Origin: Ministeria vibrans ATCC 50519
Taxonomy: Eukaryota > Protista > Filasterea
Assembly: GCA_943704425.1 (NCBI GenBank)
Contig: CALSCP010002647.1
Coordinates: 1-42,058 of the forward strand
Direction: 5' to 3'
DNA length: 42,058 bases
The notes below the pieces were generated by a model that made no database searches, was not told the DNA's origin, and was given only the letters and a program-made list of their open reading frames with translations. Shown piece by piece: positions 2,723 to 42,058 of the stretch (positions within the stretch are counted from its first letter, which is position 1; each line of letters opens with the position of its first letter). Made by a program: the position numbers and the translations under genes.

Positions 2723-3815
2723 ATGAGCAGCACGCGTGGAATCAGCAACGACCTGTCAAAAGTGCCAAAAGAGATATTCAAGAGAGCAAGAGAAAGCGCA
2801 TCGGACGCCCCAGCGGTGTTTGCCTCGTCGCTACCGCCTGTCGCTGTGCATAATATTGCTTTAGCAGTCTATAGGCGTCCGCTCCGTCTACAGATTTCCC
2901 GTAAAAGCTCGGTTTTGTAGCTCCCCAATGAGTTTTTTTTAGCGACAAATCGTTTTTTGATGTTTTTTTTTTTTTTTTTTTCACCGCTCACTCTTTCTCT
3001 CTCTCTCTCTCTGTTGTGTCTACAGCGATGAGGTGACCGACTTCCACGGAGCGACACCCTCGCCCAGCAGGCAGTTGGTGTGCACGATCTGCGAGCTGAC
3101 GGAGGAGGAGACGATTGGAGCGATGCGCTCCTGTCGCTTCTGCATGACACCGTACTGTGGCAAGTGCAAGCGAGAAAACCTGATTTGGACGCGCGACGCC
3201 TACTCCGTGTGCATTGAGTGTCGGCAGCACCAGAAGAAGCAGCTGGTGGTCCTTCGGCGTGGACCGTGCGATGTGTGTCACGGGCGCATTTCGAGCACGA
3301 GCCGCAGACGCAAGGCGGAGCACTGTGCCATCTGTTTTCTTGTGTGTTGCTACCAGTGTGTCACCACGAGTCTTGCCAGGTCACCGGTATGTCTTGTCAG
3401 CGTTTTTATTGAATAGTGGGAATCGATCTGTTAACACCCTGTCTGGCACCATTAGAAAATGGAAGACCCTAACGCACTGTACTGCGAGACGTGTCGTAGC
3501 CTCGACGAAATGGACTCGGAGATTGTCAAGACGTCGTTTGTGTCGCCACTGAGTCGCCGAAGACAGTCAGACACCCTGGAGAGCGGCACGGGACGCTTGT
3601 CAAGTGATGTCCTTGGGACGCGACGTGACTCGGCGCCATCTCTGCTGCGTTCAGACATCTTCCAGTCGATGATGGACAGTAGTGACGAGGAAGACGAGAG
3701 CGACTCCAACGACGACGGCCATCACGGCAACAGTGACGATATCGACGGTGGTGGTGATGATGCAAGTGAACAGGGTGTCTCTCTGCGACATGTCCCCCCT
3801 ACAGAGTCATTGACA

Positions 3816-3848
<33 letters not shown>

Positions 3849-6800
3849 AGGCAGAGGAGAGAGAAGCAACAGAAGAAGGTGGAGGAGGAGACGACAGAGT
3901 GGCGCCACGGAGGGCGATGGCAGCGTTCGTTTGATGATAGAGGAAGCTCTGACGAGGAAGGCACTATCTCGTCCGTGTCGAGTGTGAGTCTGGAGGACCT
4001 CGCAAACCAGACGCGCCAGGCCATGACAGCTGCTCGTGCGCCTGTCGCACAGCGGCCCATGTCGTCTATCAGTGCCTTGGAGGAGTTTTCCAGTGGACCA
4101 CCACCATTAAGTGATACCAGTGATCTGGACGACAGTGGACTGACAGCAGAGAGCGCACATGGCAGCGGCAACAACGATGTTGACACTGTTGGGGTTCCTC
4201 CGCTCGGCGACGAAGAGGGGTTCCCACCTGCCCTCGACACACTGGCACAGTCACCACTTGAAAACCAACTCAAGGTGGACGTGTCCAGTCGACCCGCCTC
4301 GATGGAGGCTCTATTGGATGTGCTTCCGCCCGACGTGTTCGAGTTTGAGGTGCCTATCAATGAGTCTCACAAACGCGCGCAGGAGGCTGAGTCCGAGCCT
4401 GAGCCTGAGCCTGTGTCTGTGCCTGAAACTGAGTCTAAGTTTGAGCGTGAGCGTGAGCCTGAGTCCGAGCCTGAAACTGAGCCTGTACTCGATGCTCCTT
4501 CTACTCCTCCTTCTGCTCATGCCCCTGTTCCTGAAATACCCAATGTCACTCCGGCTGCGCCAGTCGATGTTGTCGAGGGATCGGCTACACCGACTGCTGA
4601 TGTAAATACTGATGAAAGTGCTGAGCGCCTTGTCTCAGCCGAACCGGACACTCTCTCGCACTCTGATGCGCCCCCGACTATGACGGATACTGGTGTCTCT
4701 ACCGATACAGACGTGGTACCCGACTTGATGGATCCCATCTCGCCGCGCCGACCAAGTCGCTCCAAACGCCGTAGTTTTGACAAGGGCACGGTGCAGGCCT
4801 TTCTGAACCAGCTCGCTGACTCTCCATCACCAACTGTCACTGCTGAGACCACTTTGATGCCGTCTCCCTCTGTGTCGAGTGTCGACGATGCAACCACAAC
4901 CGTCGTACAACCGACGCAGTTGGAGCTCGATCTGACGGCGCGTGCCAAAGCCAGGCGTGAGCGCATGCGCAAGCGCACATCCTCCGTCGAATTGACTCCA
5001 TCGAAGCAGAACAATGAAGTTGTCGATGCGTGGGTCAAGTCGTTGCTAGTGGACAAGTCCAGGTCGCCCGTACAGTCCGAACCCAGCGAGGCACCATCGG
5101 TTGTCACGAGCGGCACTGAAGAGGAGCCAGTCGACGCGCCGTCACCGGCCGGCTCCCCACCACCACCACCTCTTCCGCCGAAAAAGTCGCCCTTGACATC
5201 GCCACGAAGTACTCTCATCCCACCGAAGAATGTCGCCGCATCTACCGCCTCGGCAGCAGCAGCAGCAGACCCACCACCACCACCACCACCACTGCCACCC
5301 AAAGCACTCTTGTCGCCCCGTCAGATTCGACAACAAATGGAGCGAGACGCGTTTGTTGCCGCACAAGTTGCCCTCTCCACCTCCCCGCCCCCGCCAGTGC
5401 CCGCCAAGCCCTCCTCGGGGCTTCTTCGGCGCACCGTCAGCGACCTGACCAATGCTGTTGCAGCGGAAGAGCGCGCTAAGAACGCCGCGAGCAGTAGTAG
5501 CACCGGTAATCTTGCGAGTACCTCTGCAGATGGCGGCGGCTCTGAAGCTCATCCGTCCGCGAAACGCTCGTCGTCTGATCCCACCGAGACGCAAGGGCGC
5601 ACCACGATTCTCTCGCCCGTGCCTGGCTCGCCGCTCTCCCTCATTTTGTCGCCATTGTCGCTTATCACGTCGCCCCTTTCCATCATCACGTCGCCAATCA
5701 ACGATCTTCATCACCGCGTCCGTTCCACACCGACTCCTCCCATCAGCCCGACGTTGCTCGAGCCCCCCAAATTGACATCGCCTCACAGCAAGTCGCCAGT
5801 TCAAGAAGAGGCGACAGAGGAGGAGGTGGTGGAAAAGGAGACAGCACCACCACAGCCTATTGTACAGCCAGTCCCGCCACAGGTTCAGAACGTCAAAGCA
5901 TCCTCGTCGCCCAAATTCCGCAGTCGATCGGGTCGAGTGCGTCGCACATTGCAAGTGGACACGAAAATGCGGACGGGCGACGACGACGCGAGCGAGAAGA
6001 AGGTGCGTCAAAAGCAGATTGTGTTTCTCAAGTCGGACAGTGTCATGCCACGCACCATGTCTGACCGACGCCGGTCGATGCGCGAGCAGCCCAAAGACGA
6101 TGCGTTGCTTGCCGAGAAGAACAGCGACGCGACGGCCTTTCGCCTGGGCGCTCTGTTGCGCCAGGACACGTCCGGATCAGAGTTGGGGTACAAGAACATT
6201 CGCATACCCAACGGCTGGGAAGAGCAGCGTCTGCCGACTGGCGAGCCTTATTACATCGACCATCACAACCGAACGACAAGCTGGATCGACCCACGTGCGA
6301 AACAGGGCGAAGGACTTCCTTTTGGCTGGGCCAAAATTGAGGATGCGGTGCTGGGCACGTACTTTCTGGACCACATCAATCACAAGTGCACCTACGAGAA
6401 GCCACACAAACCGTCGACGCCACGCGCCCCCGATCACGCACCTACCTACTCTACCGTTCTCAAGGCAGCCACGACCATCGACTCGAATGCGTCTCAGGGC
6501 AGGCGCAATGATGACACTTTGTCGTGCGGTCGAGCCATTACGCGACATCAGGCTGTGGTGCGTCGGACCCGCTCGGGACACGACGGCGCACCCATGCAGG
6601 CGACAGTGGTGCGCTCGGCCAGTGGCAACATCGCTCCCATGATGCAACGGGCCGAGCCGGCCGAGGCCGTCGTGAGTGCCTCAAGTTCGCACAGGGTACG
6701 TCGCGTGCCGTCGGTTGAGTCGGACTCGCGACGATCTTCCATTGGCGACCAGACTGACTTAGGTCGTGTGGCGCGCGCGCCGTCCACGGCCATCACCTCC

Positions 6801-7868
6801 TCGGTGCCATCGCTCTCGTCGGCCGTCGCGTCGCGCGTGCGGCGTATGCCATCGACTGTGCTGTCGGAGCCCTATCCGGGGGCAGCAACTACAGCAGCAA
6901 CCACGACTGTGGAGGAAGAAAGGAATGACGAGGAAGGTACTGGTGCGGGATTCTACTCAAACGAGGCACGGAAGTGGCGGCGTGCCGAGTCGGCCAATAC
7001 CCCACTGGAGTCGCCACTGCCCGCCAACGCACAGCTACTGCAAGGCCTCACGTCACCTCGTGGTGGCCAAGTGTGTGCCACTGTCAGTGAGGCGCCGCTG
7101 TCGCCGCGTGCCTCGGCAACGGTGGTGTCTCCCCGAGCGACTCGCCTGCCCGTAGCCTCATCGCGCTCCATGCCGGAAGATCACGTCGTGTCGACCGCAG
7201 TTTTAGCTGTAACATTGTCTCCGCGCCACCACCGGGGCAGTGCGGATGCATCGCCGTCTCCATCACCCTCGTCACGACCGCACTCGCGCGAGGGTCGACG
7301 GCGGGTAAGTCTGCGCAAGCCTAAGCTGCCCGAGGGCTGGTCACGCGAGTACGATCAGGAGACGGGCCACAAGACCTATGTGCACGAGGACGGCCGTCGC
7401 TCCAAGACGCGTCCCGAGACAACGCCCGCCAAATCGGCGGGTACATCTCCCGCGCGTCGCCCATCAGGCGTTGTTTCCCCGCCCCCACCGCCGTACGTCG
7501 AGCCGCAGACAGAAGAGGCGGCACAGCGTCGTCGCGCGTCTCTCATGCGCACCACATCGCTGCCCGTCTCTGACGCTCCCCGCTACACTCACAACAAGCC
7601 CTCTCAGCCGCCGCCGCCGCCGCCAGCCATCACACCCACCGTAATCACCTCTTCCTCTCCAAAGCGCTCCGCTCATCGCACCAGCTCTTCTCCCCTCGAC
7701 ATCTCCCACCACTCTCCCTCTGCCGCTCTTGCTTCACCAGAGAGTCTCTCTCCTCACGCTCATACAGAGCAGCAGCTGCACCAGGGTCGTCGCAAGGACT
7801 CCTCCAAACGCCGCCTGCCCACTTCCCCGCTTGAGTTTGACGCTGGCGATGACTTCTTTCAATTCTAA
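2723..7868 (+). CDS. Large scaffold protein: two FYVE/rabphilin-like 8-Cys zinc fingers, long Ser/Pro-rich region, tandem WW pair plus a third degenerate WW
   Basis: Exons 3026-3386 and 3456-7868 join in frame. The first exon from ATG 2723 is tentative because its donor is unresolved. CxxC patterns: CTIC..CRFC..CGKC..CIEC and CDVC..CAIC..CYQC..CETC. WW1 IPNGWEEQRLPTGEPYYIDHHNRTTSWIDP, WW2 LPFGWAKIEDAVLGTYFLDHINHKCTYEKP, WW3 LPEGWSREYDQETGHKTYVH. Confidence 0.85.
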
Positions 7869-12021: not shown

Positions 12022-12641
12022 GTTGGCAAAGAAAGACTTGAATAAGAGTTAGTTGGAGCTCAATCAGTTCATTCGTCAATAGTCGATGGAGCAAACAAAC
12101 ATGGCCGCAAAGCACGATGCCTCCTTCTAGCTGGCTGCTTAGGGGGTGGGTACGTATGCATTATAGCTCCAATGGTACATACAAGGGCGAGAGGGTTGAG
12201 GTGTGCCTCCTTTCTTCAATCCCGTGTGGGGAATTTCGGGGGGTTTCCCTAATCGATGTCACCCAATTTCATACTCTCGTACTAATAACACAGTCGATTC
12301 AATCTGGCACACAAAATTCAACTGTGTTTGATGATGCTCATTCTAGTGATCTAGTCACTCTAGTGGCTCTCTTGCGCGTGGTCCAGACTGCTGGTTGTTG
12401 GCGCGGCTCTGCAATCCTGTCGACGAAAACATCAAGTGCCTTCGAAATATTTGCAGTTTGAGAGCGTCTTGCTTCAATGCACCGCAAGGGTTCTCGCTTT
12501 ACAGAGCACCGGTTCTGTACCAACAGATTGTGGCTGTTCCACGACGGGATTGGCGAGTCGATGTGCACGACCATCGACACAGATGATCATGGCATAATGA
12601 GGGAGGACAGAGGCTCCACCTGTCACAACATCAAGCAAGGC

Positions 12642-13066
12642 NNNNNNNNNNNNNNNNNNNNNNNNNNNNNNNNNNNNNNNNNNNNNNNNNNNNNNNNNNN
12701 NNNNNNNNNNNNNNNNNNNNNNNNNNNNNNNNNNNNNNNNNNNNNNNNNNNNNNNNNNNNNNNNNNNNNNNNNNNNNNNNNNNNNNNNNNNNNNNNNNNN
12801 NNNNNNNNNNNNNNNNNNNNNNNNNNNNNNNNNNNNNNNNNNNNNNNNNNNNNNNNNNNNNNNNNNNNNNNNNNNNNNNNNNNNNNNNNNNNNNNNNNNN
12901 NNNNNNNNNNNNNNNNNNNNNNNNNNNNNNNNNNNNNNNNNNNNNNNNNNNNNNNNNNNNNNNNNNNNNNNNNNNNNNNNNNNNNNNNNNNNNNNNNNNN
13001 NNNNNNNNNNNNNNNNNNNNNNNNNNNNNNNNNNNNNNNNNNNNNNNNNNNNNNNNNNNNNNNNNN
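12642..13066. other. Assembly gap (N run)
   Basis: N bases. Confidence 1.
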
Positions 13067-13123
13067 GAGAAAGAGCTTTGGTGTGTTGTGCATTACACTA
13101 AAATTTGTATTTATTCACGGATG

Positions 13124-13415
13124 TTACAAGTCAAAGGAAAAGGTAAAAGTGTCCTTCTTTGAGCGATTGTGAAAAAGATCTGCTGTATGTGGAGGCAACG
13201 AGGAGGCCTGTAAAGTCGGTTGAGAAGACTTTGAGTCGCGTTTGGGCGTTTCGGGGTCGAGTGAAAAGTTGAATGCAAATGAGCGATCAGCCTCTTTCAG
13301 GGTCTCCGAGAGCTTCTTGCGCGGCGTCCCTGGTTCTCTGGGTGTCTCGTTGGTAGCGTCTTTCTTACACTGAGTCTCAATGAGACTGGGTATCGTCGTT
13401 GGTTCTTTCTTTTTT

Positions 13416-13511
<96 letters not shown>

Positions 13512-14249
13512 TGTGTGTGTGTGTGTGTGTTTAGGGAGAAGGGAGAAAGAAACAAAGTGATAAAGAGAGAAAGAAACAAAGTGATAAAGAGAGAGGAGTG
13601 AGTGAGTGAGAGTGAGCGTGAGAGAGGGTGAGCGGACGTGAGTGGAGACATCTAATAAAAAGAGATTGCAACAAAGAAACCAACACGTCTGGGGGGTCTC
13701 GGGTGGGTGGGGATACCTTCTGTAGAAGCGATGCTGGGTGTCAAAAAGGGACTTGATCGCCATGGCCTTGGCAGGTGCCAGTCGCTTGGGCGTGCCGAGC
13801 TCACCGTCCCAGTCATTCGACGACGACGACGCGCATGAGACTGACGCGCGCTGTAGAGCCGCTCGGGCGCGCTGCATGAGCGCGTCGTCCGCCATGCGCT
13901 TCGGAATGTCTGAGCCAAAATGATTGCGCATGCACTTTTCCTTTTGTTGCCGCGAGAGCTTTGCAGATGAGAGCAGACGAGCTGCTGAGGTTTCGCCTGT
14001 CGTCTCCAGTTGTCGAAGACACCAGGCAAGCTGTTGCTCGTAGGAGGGCGGAAGAGGAGCCGCCGTGGCGCTGTCAGACGACGTGCTTGCAGCGGCCGCA
14101 GCCTTTTTCTTTTTTTGCTTGAGACGCTTCTTCTGGCTGGCCGTTAGGGATGCACCATTAGAAGTAGTTGTAGTGGGCGGTGCAGTCGTCGTTGTCGTTG
14201 CGGTTGCAGAGGCAGGCGCGGGGGTGGAAGGGGAGGGCGGCTGTTCCAT
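13124..14249 (-). CDS. UPF0488/C8orf33 (DUF4615)-like protein, about 274 aa
   Basis: Exons 14249-13717 and 13415-13124 join in frame. Lys-rich NLS-like stretch; EQQLAWCLRQLE...ARLLSSAKLSRQQKEKCMRNHFG resembles the C8orf33 core ELAWCVEQLE...LMHSLFGDY; C-terminal FAFNF and FTFSF motifs. Confidence 0.7.
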
Positions 14250-14584
14250 GGTTCGCGTGTCGTCGAAGACTACAAGTGAAGCTGAGACGGCCAAGGAGAT
14301 GAATGGTGGCGACTGCCAACCACCGACCGTGTACTGTTGAAAGAGTCAAAGCAAATAAGTGATGACACCGAATCTGCGAATCGGTGAAATCACTGATCAC
14401 TGATCACAGACGTGGAGATTAAGACGAATTACTGTCGATTCAGTCACGTTAAAAGACAATAGAAATGTGTGTTCGAAATCAGGATTGGATTGTTGCTGAT
14501 TAGTCGTATGTTACCTGTACTATTCTCTCTTTCTCCTTCTCACTCTATCTCTATTTCATTCCTTCTTCTCTCTGCTCAGCGTGT

Positions 14585-31400: not shown

Positions 31401-32311
31401 GTTGACCTATTCTCAAAAAAAAAAAAAAAAAGCTTTCTCATCGAATTTACGCNNNNNNNNNNNNNNNNNNNNNNNNNNNNNNNNNNNNNNNNNNNNNNNN
31501 NNNNNNNNNNNNNNNNNNNNNNNNNNNNNNNNNNNNNNNNNNNNNNNNNNNNNNNNNNNNNNNNNNNNNNNNNNNNNNNNNNNNNNNNNNNNNNNNNNNN
31601 NNNNNNNNNNNNNNNNNNNNNNNNNNNNNNNNNNNNNNNNNNNNNNNNNNNNNNNNNNNNNNNNNNNNNNNNNNNNNNNNNNNNNNNNNNNNNNNNNNNN
31701 NNNNNNNNNNNNNNNNNNNNNNNNNNNNNNNNNNNNNNNNNNNNNNNNNNNNNNNNNNNNNNNNNNNNNNNNNNNNNNNNNNNNNNNNNNNNNNNNNNNN
31801 NNNNNNNNNNNNNNNNNNNNNNNNNNNNNNNNNNNNNNNNNNNNNNNNNNNNNNNNNNNNNNNNNNNNNNNNNNNNNNNNNNNNNNNNNNNNNNNNNNNN
31901 NNNNNNNNNNNNNNNNNNNNNNNNNNNNNNNNNNNNNNNNNNNNNNNNNNNNNNNNNNNNNNNNNNNNNNNNNNNNNNNNNNNNNNNNNNNNNNNNNNNN
32001 NNNNNNNNNNNNNNNNNNNNNNNNNNNNNNNNNNNNNNNNNNNNNNNNNNNNNNNNNNNNNNNNNNNATCTGTTACTGACTCGATTAGTGAAACACTGCG
32101 TATAGCTATTAGTTGTGTCGTGATTCCTTGGGGCAGGACGACCGGGTGGACATCCTACTATTGTCTTAAGTCTATAATACTATAATTAATTTGAAGATAA
32201 TAATACTAATAAGTAAATTAAAAATAATAATAATATTATAATAATAATAATAATTTTGCAATCCCATTCAAAAAAAAACCAAAAAAAGACCCAAAAAAGC
32301 AAAAAAAAAAA

Positions 32312-32394
32312 TCCGAGAACGGAGAGTCGAACTCCGGACAGCTCGATAACTTTACGTCTACAGTCGAGCACTCTGCCAACTGAGTTATTCTCGG
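32312..32394 (-). tRNA. tRNA-Tyr (anticodon GTA) with a 10-nt intron at position 37/38
   Basis: The reverse complement folds as: acceptor CCGAGAA/TTCTCGG plus discriminator A, D-stem ACTC/GAGT, anticodon stem CTCGA/TCGAG with loop CT-GTA-G-[ACGTAAAGTT]-A, T-arm CGGAG-TTCGACT-CTCCG. It has the eukaryotic Tyr C1:G72 pair and an oligo-T Pol III terminator immediately downstream. Confidence 0.95.
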
Positions 32395-32745
32395 GAAGAG
32401 AAGGCGAATTCCTGCTCACATTTGCTAAACTCCTAAATAGTGCTATATATTATCATTTTGATATTGGCAACTACAATTTTAATCTTAAAGTACTGCATCA
32501 GGTTCATCACACAGAGTCACAGATGTAAGCATGTGAATGGTTTAGTAGCAGTGACAATGCGATGCGATTTAATTTACAATAATTATATTGCAACTCAAAA
32601 ACACTTTGGAATGTCTGTGAGATATTTCCTGTATTAGGGCATTGAGTAAGGTTAGAGCGTTAGAAACAGCAACTCCAGTCTACTGACTGCCTCTGGGGAA
32701 CGTGTGGGAAACCAATGAATCTCTTTTCAATTTGTTTTAGTTTCT

Positions 32746-34056
32746 ATGGATTTATTTTTTTTCTTTCTTTCTGATAATTCACAACTTCGAGAACAAACTG
32801 CGCGTATGATTGAGCACCTTGCAACACGATGTCCCGGCTTGCACGGCCCTGGCGCCTCGCAGACCATCACTGTGATTTCCTTTTCGGAATTGTTCGACCA
32901 CCGTTCGATAGTCATCCCACTTTTCCAACGACGCTATCAGTGGACCCCTTTGATCGCCCAGCGGTGGTGGGACGATGCTATGAGTGTTGACCTTGCAGAG
33001 ATACCGGACTTTGCGCATCGGGTGGGCAAAGCTCGCTTTCGGCGATGCGATGAGGACGGACAGGCGACGCTGTGCATCGACGGCCAGCAGCGCATTACCA
33101 CCACCCTGCTGCTTGTGTGTGCTCTCCGCGATGCCACGCTGCGCCTCTCTCGCGATCATTCCCATGATGATGACTTGACTGGCGCCTGCGCCCCCCTGCT
33201 CAGACGACTGCAGAGTGCGCTGTTTCACGACGTAGCAGCCTTTGAGACCTTTGTCGCGGAGCACAAAGGAGCAGCAGCGGCCAACGTCCACCCTCACGGC
33301 GACATTCTGAAGTGTGCTCGTCTCATTCCTTCCTTTGAGGACCGTGCAGGCTTTTACAGCGTGCTCACCGGAGCCTTCTTGAATGTGACGTTGCCTCCAT
33401 CCGCCTCACTACAATCCGCCATCAAGGCGCACTTTGATACGTGTGTAGTTGAGCACCTTCTTGGCTCCACCGACGCCCGTGCACAACTCAAACGGCTGGA
33501 GTACTGCGTCGCTTGTGTACTTGATGGTATGCTCTTGACATTCATCGACATTGACAATCCCATCGACTTTGGTCAGGTATTTCTGTGGTTCCAGGAGCGC
33601 ACGCTAATTGGTCTCGGTGCGCTCCTTGCCAATCGAGCGCCGGGTCTCGACTTCTCCGCGTGCGATATGGTTCGCAATCTGCTGTTTGCTCCTTTTCTCG
33701 TGTCCTCAGAGACCAACTCGTTGCGCATGCACGAGGAGATGTACCGGCGCGAATGGCTTGTGTGCATAGAGCAGGGTCGCTCTACCGACTCCCTCGATGC
33801 GTGTCTTGCAGACTTTCTCAATCACGTTGGATTTGGCGCTACCGTACCGGCAAGCAAGCGACATTGTAGTGCTTTTGAGCTGAAGGCCGCCAAAGGTATC
33901 GACATGGTCCGTCTTGTGCACCCCGACAAACCGTTTGTTGCCGCACAGCTATACATGCGCTTTGTGTCGTGGCTGGAGACACAGTCGGCACCCACCGACA
34001 CTGGCCTTGCTCTTCATGCTCTCCGTCAGCTGCAAGACTTTATGAAGCATCGATGA
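32746..34056 (+). CDS. Intronless DUF262 (ParB/Srx-like; GmrSD/SspE N-terminal NTPase-type) domain protein; more likely start is ATG 32806
   Basis: Hallmark motifs IVIPLFQRRYQW (32908-32943), LCIDGQQRITTTLLLVCALRD (DGQQR at 33079-33093) and a degenerate VF...ANRAPGLDFSACDMVRNLLF (compare IFexlNxRGxxLxxxDlxkN). No recognisable HNH/DUF1524 domain. Confidence 0.85.
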   Translation: MDLFFFFLSDNSQLREQTARMIEHLATRCPGLHGPGASQTITVISFSELFDHRSIVIPLFQRRYQWTPLIAQRWWDDAMSVDLAEIPDFAHRVGKARFRRCDEDGQATLCIDGQQRITTTLLLVCALRDATLRLSRDHSHDDDLTGACAPLLRRLQSALFHDVAAFETFVAEHKGAAAANVHPHGDILKCARLIPSFEDRAGFYSVLTGAFLNVTLPPSASLQSAIKAHFDTCVVEHLLGSTDARAQLKRLEYCVACVLDGMLLTFIDIDNPIDFGQVFLWFQERTLIGLGALLANRAPGLDFSACDMVRNLLFAPFLVSSETNSLRMHEEMYRREWLVCIEQGRSTDSLDACLADFLNHVGFGATVPASKRHCSAFELKAAKGIDMVRLVHPDKPFVAAQLYMRFVSWLETQSAPTDTGLALHALRQLQDFMKHR

Positions 34057-34226
34057 GCTACAAGGCGATTGCTGTATGCTGGGTGGGGCGTTTTAATCTG
34101 GAGACACAGTCGGCACCCACCGACACTGGCCTTGCTCTTCATGCTCTCCGTCAGCTGCAAGACTTTATGAAGCATTGATGAGCTACAAGGCGATTGCTGT
34201 ATGCTGGGTGGGGCGTTTTAATCTGG
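33973..34226 (+). repeat. 125-bp tandem duplication of the DUF262 3' end and UTR
   Basis: 33973-34097 equals 34098-34222 except C34051/T34176. CTGG microhomology at 33973, 34098 and 34223. Confidence 0.95.
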
Positions 34227-34848
34227 TGTTTCACAGTTTGTTGTCTCTCTGACAAACTTAATATGGTTGCACGTTGTTGTATTCTATGCAACGTTTGCCT
34301 GGCACAGTCAACCTAACCTGTCTTCCTCACTGGGCCATTGAAACGCAGCTTGACGTTTCCCTGTTTTCCATCTCTTCTTTTGTCTCGTCGCTCTTGGCTT
34401 CACCACAACAATTGTTCAACCTTCTCAACGTCTTCGTTGTGTTGTCGTATGTGTTTACAAACATAACAATAAAAAGCTAAAATAAATTAATATTAATTAT
34501 TTGAGTTCCGAGTTATTATTATTATTCGAATATACCCCCCTCGACGCTGCTGTACCTTCTCACGTGACGCAAGTCAACGCGGTAAGAAACACCCATCTCC
34601 AATATAATGGAGAAGAAGAAGACATTTCCGATAATATAACAAATAGCGTCTTTCCGCTTCTCTTCGTCTCCTTCTCTCCCTCTCCCTTGCTTGCCTCTCT
34701 AATGGGCTGGTCAACTGTCTATGCTACCGAACTGCACCCTCTGAAACCCTTAATGTCATTGGCGTGTTCCTTTTTTAGTGCTCTGCAAACAAAAGAAGAA
34801 AAAGGAAAATTTAACAATCGAAATTGGAATTGCGGTGGTGTTGGCACA

Positions 34849-35163
34849 ATGGGATGGTGGGACAGCAAAACGAACCGGGTGATCTTCCTGGTGTGTCTGG
34901 CGCTGGCGATTGTGCTGGTTGCCGTGGTCCTCGCGCTGTGTCTGTGGCGACGCAGGGTCATGCAGCAGCAGCAGAAGGAGTCGGATCGGCGGAGGCGCCA
35001 GCGAGTTCAGCATGCCGTCGCCACCGCCACCAACAGCGGGCTGTCGCGCCGGGGCGAGCTCGAAGCGGTGGTCAACGAGAGCTACGGACGTGCTGCCACC
35101 ATCGAAGAGGAGCGTCTTCAGCAGCTGAGAGTGTCGAACAATGTGTTGCGCGACTACAAGTAA
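34849..35163 (+). CDS. Small single-pass membrane protein (104 aa), orphan
   Basis: GC-rich ORF MGWWDSKTNR-VIFLVCLALAIVLVAVVLALCLW-RRRVMQQQQ...VNESYG...DYK in AT-rich surroundings. Confidence 0.55.
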   Translation: MGWWDSKTNRVIFLVCLALAIVLVAVVLALCLWRRRVMQQQQKESDRRRRQRVQHAVATATNSGLSRRGELEAVVNESYGRAATIEEERLQQLRVSNNVLRDYK

Positions 35164-35432
35164 GACATTCCAACCAACAACCAAGAATGTGTGTCCTATC
35201 CACGACTTTTGCGCTTTTTGTCAGTCCGCATCATTGATAATTATATTAATTTATTACGATTTTTACTGTATTATCGGTATGAATCGTGACTGTCTGTGTG
35301 TGATTGTGCGTGAGTACGCGTGCTCGTGTGGTGTTTTAAAAGTTTACTATTGTGACGATTGTTAATAGAAAAACAATAATAATAATAATAAGAAGAAGAA
35401 GAATACAACCCAGTAATTAAAAATAAAAATTA

Positions 35433-36524
<1,092 letters not shown>

Positions 36525-36658
36525 ACCAACTGCCAACAAACTATCAACGATCTACCAACGGACTACCAGCTACCATAAACCATGCAATGTAAATAAATTA
36601 TAATAATAATACAAATAATAAAAATAATTATAATAATAATTATTATTTATTATAATAA

Positions 36659-36697
<39 letters not shown>

Positions 36698-36853
36698 CAA
36701 TAATAATAATAATAATTATAACAACTCAATTAATACTCTTATTAAATGCTTTTGTGACTTAATTTATCAGACATTTCACAATTTGCGAGGACGATCCAAA
36801 GTTTTCATTCTCATTCTATCACACCACTAGCTCCACAGAAAAAAAAACTCTCC

Positions 36854-39800
36854 CTACTCGTAGACTACTGAACCACGCGCCATCCTCGTGCGTGCGTGGT
36901 GTGTGTCTTCCTTGTGCGAATCGCCGTGCTTCCTGTCGCGTAGGCGGTTCAGGGCCAGCTGCCAGCGCAGACGCGGCACATGTGTACGCGCCTCTGGGTC
37001 AAAAGCAAACTTGGCCAACACATTCACCAACGGATGGTACTCCATCCACCACCTGTACAAAACATCAAAAAAGTACACTCAGCAGTCGATGAGGTGCAAA
37101 ACAACTCAAGGGTACCGATCAATAGGAACCCTCAATTTGAAATCGGTGCGTGTCGCAAGTTCTTCAACGGGAGTAAAGACCGATGACGAGCCAATCTGAC
37201 CAACCACTGCGACACTCAAATCGTCGCGGCAAGGAAGACTAAATAGAGTCGTAAAATCATATCAAAGAAGTAAAACACCAGACATCGCAGCAACAGTCAC
37301 ATACCTTCCATGAAAGCTGAAAAGCCACTCGACCGCTCTGGTGGCGTACTTGACACCTGCAATGCGATCGGCGGGTGACGGCGCCAGGCCTTGCTGCAGA
37401 TGTCCCAGAATGTTACTGCGCGCCGTGAACAGTCCTTTGCCTTCCTCTTCGTACAGTCGCTGTAGAAAGTCACTCGTGTAGGTCAAACTGCACTTTTCGT
37501 TGCGCAACAGCACACCACATCGCGCTCCCTATATCAAACACCAGAGCCCTTCGTGAGCAACTTGACAACAACGAAAAAACAAAAAAAAAAAAAACAAAAA
37601 AGGGGGCGGGGTTCGTCTACGAAACTCTTACCTCTTCGAATCGAGTTTTCATATGCTCCAAATCGCGCAGAACACGATCAATCTTAATACCCTCTTCGCT
37701 CGTGTACGACAAGTCTGACCCACTCGCAATCGCACCAACCGTCGCAAGGTATCCTACAAACGCAAGTAAAGACGTCATGGATTGTTCTCTCCTCTTTTCC
37801 CATCTCTCATACCACAGTTGTTGCCGTGCGTCTCCACAATGAACATGCGTCGACGGGTGCCCGACGCACTCTGCTTAAGCACGTCGACAGCCCCCACAAT
37901 GGCATTGAGAGCCGTATCGGTGCCCAGCGCGCACTCGGTGCCCGGCACATTGTTGCTAATGGTGGCTGGTAGGCATGTCATGGGAATGCACAGTGCAGGG
38001 TATGTGTCGCGGGCCGCCGCGAGCGCGCGCAGACCTGTAAACGCCTCAAACCCACCAATGTTAAATAGGGCCGTCACATTGTGCTCACGCAGCGTGCGCG
38101 CAATATTCTCCATAGGCGCCTCAGTTGTGCCGGGTATGACGCGGTTCGTGCCCAGTGCACAGCCGCCCATGTTCGCCCACGTGTCCACGTCCATCCATTT
38201 GAGTGCCTTCACGCGTCCCTGGGCAAGCCCCAAAAACCCATCGAGACAGCCTACGACGCAGCTTCCCCGATCTAGTGCGAGACGCACGGCTGCCCGCGCC
38301 GCACTGTTCATGCCGGCACAAGGCGCTCCCGTGTGCATCACCAGAAGACACCCTCGCTCACATGCCTTACTCTCGTCGCGCTCCATGTCAAACTGGTGCC
38401 GCAACGACTCCGACTCCTCGAGTGTCTCCGACACACAATTGACCTTCTTGAGTGTTTCAAAATCCTTTGCAAAGTCGCGTCCGCGCAGCGCCATCGCCTG
38501 CTCGTACTTTCCCTCACCAATCAGCTTAGCCACCCTCTGACACTCTTCCACACTCTGCACCAGGGGACTCGCCACAATCTCCGTCCCAATCACTCCCACA
38601 ACCACAGCAGGCGCGTGAGCGGGTCGTGTCAGCAGCTGCTGCACTGCACACGCACCCTGTACAGTGCCCAAGTATCGGTCAAACGCCGACGGCGCTCCAC
38701 CTCGTTGCACGTGTCCCAACGTCGTAATGCGCGTGTCGTGGCCCAGTCGGGTGCCCAGAATCTACCAAACATATTAAAAAAAAACAGACAAACACACGCT
38801 CTGCATTATGTATGCAATATGGATTGAATTCATAGCGCTACTGCTTACGTCTTTAATGTACTGTGCAGTGATGGGATTGCCATGGCGGTCACGAGCGCCC
38901 TCCGCAATGATCACAATGGAGCATCGACGACCCCCACTGCGTGTCTGAGAAATCATCAACATAATGAGGTTAGTTAAGCAAGCAACGTCCATGTGGAAGG
39001 CGCCCAAGTTGAAAAACAAACAAACAGCCAACCAAACCAAACAGACACACACGCACGTACACTGCACACTCTCGCTTTTTTTTAATAATATTATGTATCC
39101 CTTACACGGCGGAGTTGGTTGCAGAGGATCTGCTCCCAATCGTCAACGGTGGGAGGACACTCCGGGATCAGCACCCAGTCGGCACCCACCGCAAGTGCCG
39201 TCATCAGTGCCAGGTAGCCACAGTTCCTTCAAGGGTGAGACAGATAGCGTGTAAGGCACAGGCTGCTTGCTACTACATCGCTTCGCTTCTACGCACCTTC
39301 CCATGACCTCAAGCACAAAGGAGCGCTTGTGCGACTGTGCTGTGGACACAATCGAGTCAGACGCTTCAATGATGCGGTGTAGGGCAGTGTTGGCGCCAAT
39401 GGTGAGGTCTGTGCCGCACATGTCGTTGTCGATGGAGCCCACCATGCCCACAACGGTCAAGACATTATACTGTGCTCCGATCTGAGCGCTGATCTCTCCC
39501 GCCTCAACCAGCTCTGTGATCAACGAGGGCCACTCCAACTTAAACAAGTTGGCGCCCGTCAAACTTCCGTCGCCGCCAATGCAGATCTGAGACAATACAA
39601 AGAAGAGGGTAGCAGAGTAAGGAAAATGTTTGTATATGGGAGAGAGGGAATGAATGAGAGCAAGAGAGAGAGAGAAAGACAAAAAAGAGAAATAGAGAGA
39701 GAGAGAGACAAAGAGAAAAAGAGAGAGAGAGACAAAGAGAAAAAGAGAGAGACAAAGAGAAAAAGAGAGACAAGAGAAAAAGAGACAGACAAGGAGAAAA

Positions 39801-40693
39801 CGAGAGCGACAAAGAGAAAAAGTAGAAGTATAACTACATCAATCCAAGACACACATTGAAAGCAGTGCACAACGAGAAAAAAAAAACAAACAAAAAAGCA
39901 AACAAAACAAAAACGTCATACCAAGTTTGAGATTCCCAGTTGCACAAGATTCTTGCACGCTCGCAAACGTCCACTTCGCTCGCGGAATTCCTTGCACCGC
40001 GCCGTTCCAATACACGTCCCACCAAGACTAATAAGTCCTCCCGTATCAATCCAGTCCATAGCGCGAATGTTGTCGCCGCCATCAACCAGGCCTTGGTAGC
40101 CCTGAGGCAAGTCAATGCACAAAACATGAGCAAACATGAGCAAATCATCCATATGACAAGATGCGCATTTTCCTACCTCGTAAATAGCAAAGGCCTTCAT
40201 TTCCATCGCATGCGCCGTCTTTACCACGGAGCGGACGGCGGCATTCATTCCTACGCAATTGAGAGTGTTCACACAAAAGGGCAAAGCTCGCACTTGCACT
40301 GGGCGGAGGGTGTACGGCGGCACAGGCGCGGGGGCAGCGCACGGGCCAGGCAGTGTACGCTGCACATGTGCTCAGGGGGGCGGTGGGTCGCATGGGGGCC
40401 ACAGACAGCGGCAGAGGGGACGAGTGCAAAAATGCGTGATTGGATTGGACTGTTGCGGTGCGACACAGATCGTACCTGGAGCATCGCCGCCGCTGGTCAT
40501 GACTGCTACGGCGCGTCCTTTGCCCAGGGGCGGTCCATTGAGCACACGGAAGTTCACGGGAGCGGACTCTACAAGAGAGAGCGCGAGCGAGTCAGTCAAC
40601 ACATTAACACATTGAGGCGAAGCGTCTCTCTTTCGCACCCCATCGATCCGAACTGGTGGACGACGTCGATGTCGACGACTGTGAGTGTTGCAT
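36854..40693 (-). CDS. PFK: ATP-dependent 6-phosphofructokinase, eukaryotic tandem-domain type (multi-exon)
   Basis: Catalytic half: [77 protein letters not shown]. Regulatory half: [32 protein letters not shown]. The ATG at 40693 is tentative. Confidence 0.96.
39650..39825. repeat. Intronic purine-rich 20-22 bp tandem repeat (GAGAGACAAAGAGAAAAA)
   Basis: Several tandem units within a PFK intron. Confidence 0.75.
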
Positions 40694-40847
40694 GTCGCTT
40701 ATGTTGAAGAGAAAATTGATTATATGTCATATGATTATATGATTAATGATTTCGATTATCGACTTCAGTCAGAGACAAAAGTACACACAAATTTTTTCTA
40801 ATTTTTTTTAACATTGGAAGAAAAAATAGGACACGAATGATTATTTA

Positions 40848-41880
40848 TTACTTTTTGTGCAACGCTGCACAATCGACACACACGCGACAGGGATCGTCCG
40901 AAGTGGCGCCCAGACGGCTCTTGGGGATTTCTGGAGATTCTAGAGAGCATTCGCGGCACAAGACAGCGCCACACGCAGCACAGTGTACGCGAGGTTCCAC
41001 TGACAGTGGCCGCACCACACAGCGGCCGCACGGGGTGTTGGACAACAGTGACCGTGACGGCACGCCACCTCCGCCCTTCTTAGGGTCGTCGCCTCGCTTC
41101 AGCGCCTCCAGTGTGTCTGCGCGAGCCTGCGACGGCGCATTACCCGCAACACGACGCAGAAATGCCCCAAAATCGTGACAGTCCTTGACACTTGCCTCTT
41201 GCCACTCCACGTCGTCCTGGAACTTAGCAATGGCTTTGTCAACATTAAAGCCCGCCAGACTCAGGTAGGCAAGTGCCTCGCCAGGCTCCCGCTCGTGCGT
41301 CACCCGCATAAACGTCTTGATGGCCATCCGGCGCCTCAGTGCCTCGATCACCTCGGGATCGGGCAGGGGCACGTCGCACGCGCGCATATCCTTGGGGCGC
41401 GGCACGAGTAGCGAATAGTACCCGATCACGTCCGTCGTTTGCATTCGGTTGAGTCGTCGCAGCTCAGTCGTGTCTGTGCCATACCGCACCGCAATACCCG
41501 CAAGCGTATCCTGCAAGACGTACAATAATAAGTACGGTGAAAGTTTGATTCGAAGTAATTATTCATACTGATTCGGAAACGTAGTGGACAATGGTGTCGA
41601 GACCTGTTGCCGCAAGACGTTGTTGTTCCTGTTCGAGTTGGGCACGCTGGTCCAGGGCCCGTTGCGAGGGTGCCTCTGCGACACTGGATGAGGTGGACAT
41701 GCCCGAGTCCGAGGGGACGTTTGAAGCTGTCGATGAGGTGTACTGCGCGAGAAGTTGGTCGCTGTACTGTGTGCGGTAGGAGCATTGGAAGGTGTGGATG
41801 TCGAGGTCTCGACGGTCTACCAGTGTGTTACAGCCGTAGAAAGGACATGTGATCATGACTGCCGAAGCGTCCGCCGTCAT
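40848..41880 (-). CDS. TRAF-type-like zinc finger + LysM + UBA-like + FYVE-like zinc finger protein (5' end may lie beyond the window)
   Basis: Exons 41880-41569 and 41510-40848 join in frame. CPFYGCNTLVDRRDLDIHTFQC; LysM IVHYVSES|DTLAGIAVRYGTDTTELRRLNRM...LLVP; UBA-like AIKTFMRVTHEREPGEALAYLSLAGFNVDKAIAKF; CGRC...HCAACGAVLCREC...RVCVDC. Confidence 0.85.
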
Positions 41881-41919
41881 CTGCAGCGTACTGTTGTGTC
41901 TGTGTGGGTTGTGGAACCA

Positions 41920-42058
<139 letters not shown>

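Follow-up and report, generated by a model that had tools for sequence, protein, structure and literature searches.

To our knowledge, DUF262 proteins are known almost solely as the sensing and nucleoside triphosphatase (NTPase) halves of bacterial anti-phage nucleases. An intact gene of this type in a eukaryotic chromosome raises the question of how it came to be there and what its product might do. The gene considered here belongs to Ministeria vibrans ATCC 50519 (Filasterea; assembly GCA_943704425.1, 29.7 Mb in 2860 contigs) and lies within positions 1-42,058 of the forward strand of contig CALSCP010002647.1; this whole stretch of 42,058 nucleotides (nt) is called the window. An earlier note on the same DNA took it for a bacterial-type gene that a eukaryotic chromosome had acquired by horizontal transfer. 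The best reading of the comparisons described below is that its product belongs to a family long resident in eukaryotes, with a fold ultimately of prokaryotic defence-system ancestry, and that the gene was duplicated in this lineage. By analogy with bacterial proteins of known activity, the product would be an anciently acquired, eukaryote-resident, nuclease-free DNA sensor or switch dependent on nucleoside triphosphate (NTP), a reading given a probability of roughly 0.6.

The open reading frame (ORF) at 32746-34056 (+) is intact and intronless and encodes 436 amino acids (aa) when counted from its first ATG; no sequence differences are listed across it in four sequencing runs. The intact, intronless ORF of more than 400 aa described in the earlier note is thus borne out, except that translation probably begins at 32806. 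The first 20 codons (32746-32805) have no counterpart in a paralogue from the same genome or in a 47-member family alignment. Family members and paralogue alike begin at the position corresponding to the second ATG, with the N-terminal pattern M-x-x-H-x-x-Y-x-C-P-G-L-H-G-P, and the assembled transcript contig starts at 32764, 3' of the first ATG (contigs of this kind cannot fix the true 5' end). Because no relative has the first 20 codons and the RNA contig starts past the first ATG, the real start is probably the ATG at 32806, which gives a predicted protein of 416 aa; residue numbers count from this methionine. The composition of the ORF (GC 0.563; GC at third codon positions, GC3, 0.611) resembles that of other coding ORFs in the window. 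The features of the gene and its product are as follows, with local model confidence given as the predicted local distance difference test (pLDDT).

32746-32805 (+): in-frame upstream extension of 20 T-rich codons, probably non-coding, as 5' untranslated region (UTR) or promoter
32806-34056 (+): probable true coding sequence (CDS) of the nuclease-less DUF262 protein, 416 aa plus stop, indicated by the ORF, the family and paralogue start, the RNA contig 32764-34002 and Pfam PF03235
32830-32850 (+): family-specific N-terminal motif CPGLHGP, residues 9-15, ahead of the DUF262 core; pLDDT 81-94
32917-32943 (+): DUF262 motif I, PLFQRRYQW (QRxxxW), with P38, Q41, R42 and W46 invariant in 47 sequences
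33079-33093 (+): DUF262 motif II, DGQQR, the NTP-hydrolysis motif, with D92-R96 invariant in the family
33580-33645 (+): motif III, FLWFQERTLIGLGALLANRAPG, split by a 13-14-residue insertion (F259 ... N276-R-A-P-G280)
33646-34053 (+): C-terminal six-helix domain, residues 281-416, the counterpart of the helical middle domain of DndI/SspE ('ParBDB', PMC12065111)

Assignment to DUF262 rests on Pfam PF03235 (GmrSD_N, formerly DUF262), which matches the window protein at 41.7 bits (cut-off 33.2; E 1.8e-10), over profile positions 2-78 of 199 only, and also matches all 47 aligned relatives. Nothing else in a Pfam-A scan of the window protein was significant, and NCBIfam gave no match to it. PLFQRRYQW, DGQQR and FLWFQERTLIGLGALLANRAPG are present as the earlier note quoted them, the NTPase motifs are intact, and F40 aligns in the family profile with Tyr25 of the YQR motif of DndI. 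The absence of an HNH motif was also seen correctly, as PF07510 (DUF1524/HNH) has no match in the window protein or in any of the 47 relatives. PADLOC matches were confined to HEC-06, Orf5 and SspE and reached at most about 100 N-terminal residues. Examination for sulfiredoxin (Srx) or canonical ParB, by way of a close structural match, the Srx catalytic Cys motif, and a ParB box with helix-turn-helix, was negative, the Srx Cys motif being absent.

The third motif sets the family apart. Motifs I and II of DUF262 have been defined as QRxxxW and DGxQR (PMC12065111); motif III is a contiguous FxxxN, and the PF03235 model leaves this region of the window protein unaligned. Columns 30-343 of the family profile (residues 22-341 of the window protein) align with a bacterial profile in hhalign at a probability of 99.96% and E 6e-39. 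F259 and N276..G280 then fall on the canonical F, N and G, the gaps between them being 5+8+1. This alignment supports the insertion that the earlier note proposed for the third motif, and the whole family shares it. A local HMMER alignment to DndI had suggested a replacement of N by Q without insertion; this was rejected, as hhalign keeps the Asn (N276) and shows an insertion.

An AlphaFold2 model built from the 47-row alignment has a pLDDT of 92.2, falling to 64 in the motif III insertion loop, and a predicted template modelling score (pTM) of 0.92. DndI and SspE were the sole Foldseek matches of this model at E<1e-3. The C-terminal region, which the earlier note had called unrecognised, also finds its place here: folded alone, this domain has the DndI/SspE middle domain as its top three matches. 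In DndI the N-terminal domain comprises residues 1-238 and the HNH motif lies near N541 (PMC11662687), and residue 330 of DndI corresponds to the last part reached by the model. The model therefore covers DUF262 and the first helical part of the C-terminal half, ending well before the nuclease. The predicted architecture is a ParB/Srx-fold DUF262 NTPase domain followed by a helical middle domain of DNA-binding type, without a nuclease.

The relatives of the window protein are distant and, where named, eukaryotic. Of 1.84 billion representative proteins (cluster representatives) scanned with HMMER, 677 fall below E 1e-3; below 1e-10 there are 199, and below 1e-30 there are 46. Identity is just 35-39% for the best of them, and related clusters number about 150-200. 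The named members come from Rhodomonas and Palpitomonas (Cryptista), Chloroparvula (green alga), Mastigella and Pelomyxa (Archamoebae), Amastigomonas (apusomonad), Namystynia (diplonemid) and the copepod Tigriopus californicus (on a 16.5-Mb chromosome record). At least seven named lineages, all eukaryotic, thus have family members. Eukaryotes make up 87% of the nearest protein-atlas cluster, Bacillariophyta (diatoms) being the commonest. The gene ranges of the Tigriopus and Pelomyxa members exceed their CDS, so both have introns, and the neighbours of the Pelomyxa gene are eukaryotic (RhoGAP, Arf/Ras, kinases, Tub). Contigs of unnamed members look eukaryotic as well (a split melibiase, an F-box gene, a reverse transcriptase), and members on metatranscriptome contigs are monocistronic, one such contig ending in a short poly(A) run. 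Three members without the N-terminal motif (P0048, P0049 and P0068) were suspected of being bacterial; they lie on single-gene transcript-like contigs, one with a short poly(A), and a bacterial origin was not shown.

Bacterial DUF262+DUF1524 proteins first appear at E ~1e-8 with a single-sequence query; with a profile query they appear from 1e-32, versus 1e-54 to 1e-128 for family members. Matches of the family profile have E 5e-18 for DndI (9JFL) and 1e-11 for SspE. Among 185,579 prokaryotic species, scanned as one genome per species with patterns that included the family's own motif III, no close relative was found; the best matches were 20-29% identical where they were long, and those of 35-42% identity were confined to the N-terminal 80-100 residues. 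IMG/VR likewise held no close relative, only N-terminal matches of 80-100 aa. As far as sampled, the family appears exclusively eukaryotic.

Its signatures point the same way. Invariant in the 47-row alignment are P38, Q41, R42, W46, D92-G-Q-Q-R96, D179, G280 and W317. Signatures were counted in 157 family sequences, many of them fragments, and in 96 bacterial DUF262+DUF1524 proteins. CPG[LFIYM] ahead of DGQQR occurs in 76 of the 157 and the string F.W.QE in 86, versus none of the 96 bacterial proteins in either case, while the contiguous canonical F...N..G is found in 94/96 bacterial but only 4/157 family sequences. A maximum-likelihood tree of 63 rows, made by a quick search with a small bacterial sample (15 DUF262+DUF1524 proteins) and with its unnamed rows taken to be eukaryotic, separates the family from these bacterial proteins with a Shimodaira-Hasegawa-like approximate likelihood ratio test (SH-aLRT) value of 100. 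Within the family, Pelomyxa and Mastigella group together (99) and the two Cryptista do so weakly (86); the deep branching order is not resolved.

The sister of the window gene in this tree (100) is the paralogue in the same genome (contig C335:189032-190336(-); L004:1444-2787(-)). It is intact, encodes 448 aa that are 46% identical to the window protein, starts with MLKHLSWECPGLHGP and adjoins a 380-aa ORF. With this paralogue beside it in the genome, the window gene is not a lone bacterial import. Each of the two proteins has a CPGLHGP-type motif and, in motif III, the insertion (F.W.QE ... N-P-x-P-G); neither has a nuclease. The earlier note had held that an ancient, vertically inherited eukaryotic family of known housekeeping function would tell against its reading. 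What was found comes near to that: an old eukaryotic family, though not one of known housekeeping function.

The chromosomal setting bears on whether the gene is truly resident. Four runs of N occur in the window, the nearest being 615 N at 31453-32067, just upstream of a tRNA gene. The earlier description of an ungapped stretch holds from 32068 onward, where the tRNA, AAT repeats and PFK all lie, and fails upstream, at the 615-N run. The N-free stretch 32068-42058 contains the tRNA, the AAT repeats, the DUF262 ORF, a spliced small gene, the PFK exon and FYVE/LysM ORFs; on the far, upstream side of the gap, WW, LIM, protein-kinase and LRR ORFs occur in the window. Also in the window is an uninterrupted ORF of 1470 codons at 3456-7865(+), with a WW domain at residues 918-946, so long intronless coding stretches are not unusual here. 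The features surrounding the gene are listed below.

~32200-32260: AAT repeats, within the N-free stretch
32312-32394 (-): neighbouring intron-containing tRNA-Tyr (Rfam RF00005, 52.2 bits); its anticodon loop has extra bases (intron)
33973-34222 (+): tandem 125-nt duplication across the stop codon; copies 33973-34097 and 34098-34222, 99% identical
34057-34477 (+): 3' UTR, at least to the reach of the RNA contigs of run X9
34778-35717 (+): downstream neighbour gene with spliced intron 35160-35542; an RNA contig of run X9 skips 383 nt with GT..AG ends
37778-38761 (-): PFK exon, within the N-free stretch

The anticodon of the tRNA at 32312-32394(-), judged by eye, is GTA. ARAGORN found no tRNA here, probably because of the intron, and Rfam then found the tRNA-Tyr. 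The downstream neighbour is a small membrane-protein gene.

Linkage was assessed with two DNA sets from the same organism but different studies (2011 and 2022), whose unitigs or contigs were placed on 32068-35800. Each set contains a contig at 32367-34002, running from the tRNA into the ORF, and another at 34197-35361. In both DNA runs a second contig shares the 54 bases at 32367-32420 (2 differences) and then diverges, which fits another tRNA-Tyr copy elsewhere in the genome. The tandem 125-nt duplication collapses to one unitig whose depth, in each of the two DNA runs, is roughly double that of its flanks, so it is real; it is also present in RNA, and its second copy falls in the 3' UTR, leaving the protein unaltered.

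In run X9 a single unspliced contig (32764-34002) covers the ORF, and further contigs cover the repeat units and 34197-34477; none crosses 34568-34692, and the tRNA is likewise uncovered. With the ORF covered, the intergenic DNA and tRNA uncovered and the neighbour spliced, X9 is therefore RNA, and the DUF262 gene is transcribed, unspliced, beside a spliced gene. A poly(A) marine metatranscriptome contains an identical 232-nt piece, and runs containing the stretch include seawater and algal metagenomes. Contamination and assembly chimera are excluded; the earlier note's case against a contaminant contig stands, now on unitigs from two DNA studies that join the ORF to the tRNA-Tyr and on the splicing of the neighbour in RNA.

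The genome also holds a third DUF262 gene, of canonical type, on contig C1890 at ~12166-14360(+) (loci L007, L010 and L091). Its motifs are FQRPYAW, DGIQR and an uninterrupted motif III (FSTVNARGIPL), and VEHILPQN occurs in a later piece; PF03235 and PF07510 match it at 64 and 33 bits, respectively, across separate open frames, as if split by introns. This is the only PF07510 match in the genome. Because it carries both PF03235 and PF07510, the same eukaryote also has a nuclease-bearing gene of GmrSD type. Elsewhere in the assembly are three integrin-beta genes (C749, C376, C2390), two T-box genes (C1301, C1244) and many cadherin repeats (C245, C1086, C2206, C2595), and no light-harvesting-complex genes were found in the genome. 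We infer a marine heterotroph, whose integrin-beta, T-box and cadherin genes point to a gene repertoire like that of unicellular holozoans.

Variation within the family includes one fusion. On a marine metagenome scaffold (L095:1195-3489), the member P0064 is a single ORF in which a class-I S-adenosylmethionine (SAM) methyltransferase (Methyltransf_25/TehB-like, residues ~35-145) is fused N-terminally to a family member. In the sister contigs L092-L094 the ORF begins later, with a short overlapping upstream ORF. The fusion could represent a modify-and-sense pair, or non-DNA chemistry.

Outside the family, DUF262 proteins occur in BFVD among giant viruses of protists, including Harvfovirus, Yasminevirus, Hokovirus, Catovirus, Indivirus, Hyperionvirus and the choanoflagellate virus ChoanoV1; some are nuclease-less and 360-390 aa long. 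Their structures match the window model at template modelling (TM) scores of 0.16-0.49, no better than bacterial ones.

What the protein might do is suggested by its bacterial counterparts. DndI with the substitution R87A in DGQQR loses its ATPase activity and no longer confers defence; phosphorothioate DNA stimulates the ATPase, Tyr25 of the YQR motif takes part in sensing, and hydrolysis drives a conformational change by which DNA is released (PMC11662687). The helical domain that follows DUF262 has been described as DNA-binding in SspE, and the two-domain arrangement of DUF262 and ParBDB has been proposed as a sensor in NsnA (PMC12065111). By analogy, a role of the window protein as NTPase or DNA-state sensor is the most reasonable inference, and the domesticated NTPase or modified-DNA sensor suggested in the earlier note agrees with it, the NTPase motifs being intact. 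The protein would bind and hydrolyse NTP at the DGQQR pocket, and this cycle would gate DNA binding. The feature read could be a backbone or base modification, or foreign DNA, and the output would be regulation or the recruitment of a separate effector. Action as a sensor or switch is proposed because the protein has no nuclease of its own.

Several points weigh against this reading. The neighbouring tRNA-Tyr and small membrane-protein gene give no hint of a partner effector. Most members come from unnamed metagenome or transcriptome contigs, for which a eukaryotic origin is assumed. Given the break in motif III and the novel N-terminal motif, nucleotide preference, and even substrate, may differ from those of the bacterial enzymes, and the fusion in one lineage to a SAM methyltransferase of small-molecule type also suits a non-DNA role. 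A bolder form of the proposal sees a pan-eukaryotic surveillance module: the sensor half of modification-dependent or phosphorothioate-sensing restriction enzymes, kept without the nuclease since early eukaryotes, would serve as an NTP-gated clamp or sensor of foreign or abnormally modified (viral, transposon) DNA and pass it to separate eukaryotic effectors. This is offered as a tentative extension, more doubtful than probable by a wide measure; if true, it would add a new branch, with prokaryotic roots, to eukaryotic innate immunity or epigenome control.

The alternatives differ over origin as well as function. A recent horizontal transfer, in which a bacterial or phage DUF262 gene was lately inserted and is under domestication, would suit a gene that is intronless while the checked neighbour is spliced, that adjoins a tRNA gene, a classic integration landmark, and that belongs to a domain overwhelmingly prokaryotic both in the control genomes and in the literature (PMC4619093). 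However, no prokaryotic or viral relative exceeds ~20-29% over the full length, whereas the closest relatives are eukaryotic, at 35-46%, and occur in at least seven lineages, some with introns. An old paralogue is its sister in the same genome, the family signatures are absent from 96 bacterial proteins, the composition equals that of host coding DNA, and intronlessness is shared with other long ORFs in the window, such as 3456-7865. Recent import, the reading taken from the earlier note, is thus largely refuted and now highly improbable. An artefact or relic has almost nothing left in its favour: a 615-N gap 680 nt upstream and a tandem duplication at the 3' end might suggest a contaminant contig, an assembly chimera or a decaying, functionless pseudogene, but unitigs of two independent DNA sets link the ORF to the tRNA and the spliced neighbour, the duplication stands at 2x depth in both DNA runs without touching the ORF, and the ORF is intact, transcribed and retains every family-invariant residue.

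The gene might instead be carried by a selfish element of eukaryotes, or belong to giant-virus DNA that was endogenised, and spread among eukaryotes without a host function. The patchy distribution over supergroups, the unsettled deep order of the tree, a reverse-transcriptase gene less than 10 kb from one member, and the DUF262 proteins encoded by giant viruses, a choanoflagellate virus among them, are compatible with such mobility. It is nevertheless improbable, as neither the window copy nor the paralogue has transposon or viral genes beside it, IMG/VR is without a close relative, giant-virus DUF262 structures match no better than bacterial ones (TM 0.16-0.49), and clustering by lineage (Archamoebae and, weakly, Cryptista) suggests vertical descent within groups. 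A substrate other than DNA is less easily dismissed, though still unlikely. The fold may have been re-purposed for an NTP-dependent enzyme whose substrate is a protein or a small molecule, much as sulfiredoxin arose from the ParB fold, a precedent given as a citation within PMC4619093. Loss of the nuclease, the altered motif III, the new N-terminal motif with conserved Cys/His and the lineage with a Methyltransf_25/TehB-type fusion in a single ORF would fit; against this, the DNA-binding-type middle domain of DndI/SspE is kept, the catalytic Cys motif of Srx is absent, and the methyltransferase fusion is restricted to that one lineage. The eukaryote-resident, nuclease-free DNA sensor or switch is therefore the reading preferred here.

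Prokaryotic defence modules retained in eukaryotes form a growing list and are an active topic. What is delimited here is a eukaryote-specific, nuclease-free DUF262 derivative with its own conserved signatures, distributed from protists to a copepod and transcribed. Among retained defence modules its predicted form, a sensor without an effector, is unusual. It is now a testable question what a modification-sensing NTPase would read in eukaryotic chromatin or invading DNA, and via which partner. The alignment, structural model and diagnostic motifs provide a handle for a census and for work in tractable hosts such as diatoms and Tigriopus.

DUF262 in eukaryotes is not unprecedented, since a survey by Machnicka et al. 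(2015; PMC4619093) had noted homologues of the GmrSD family in the genomes of three eukaryotes, Thalassiosira oceanica among them; a nuclease-less subfamily specific to eukaryotes, with its signatures and breadth, was not part of their description. A literature search, with subscription journals outside its coverage, found no paper describing a nuclease-less eukaryotic DUF262 family or such signatures, and the family is apparently undescribed. The window protein is a Pfam DUF262 member that stands outside GmrSD/SspE/DndI, NsnA and DndB. Membership in GmrSD/SspE/DndI falls away because the nuclease is absent, although the helical middle domain after DUF262 is common to that group and the window protein. 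SspE (of SspABCD-SspE) and the type IV enzymes GmrSD/BrxU are DUF1524/HNH fusions, whereas the window protein and its 47 relatives are without the nuclease, and the PADLOC SspE models match just ~30-90 N-terminal residues of the window protein. DndI, which senses phosphorothioates in the Salmonella IscS-DndBCDE-DndI system (9JFL), has an HNH nickase domain (~N541) that the window protein lacks, and is itself without the CPGLHGP extension and the motif III insertion; the two are ~14% identical. It acts together with a dnd modification operon, and there is no such context at this locus (the genome was not searched for dnd/ssp genes).

The closest likeness in layout is to NsnA (of Menshen) and DndB, which have the same architecture of ParB-DUF262 and ParBDB without a nuclease (PMC12065111). 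This likeness is architectural and does not demonstrate kinship. The PADLOC NsnA models do not match the window protein, and DndB carries DGQHR in place of the DGQQR that is invariant in the family. The NsnA operon also encodes an ABC-ATPase, NsnB, and an effector, NsnC, whereas the neighbours in the window are tRNA-Tyr and a small spliced gene. As a proposed DNA sensor that signals to separate effectors, NsnA nonetheless offers the best analogy for how the window protein may act.

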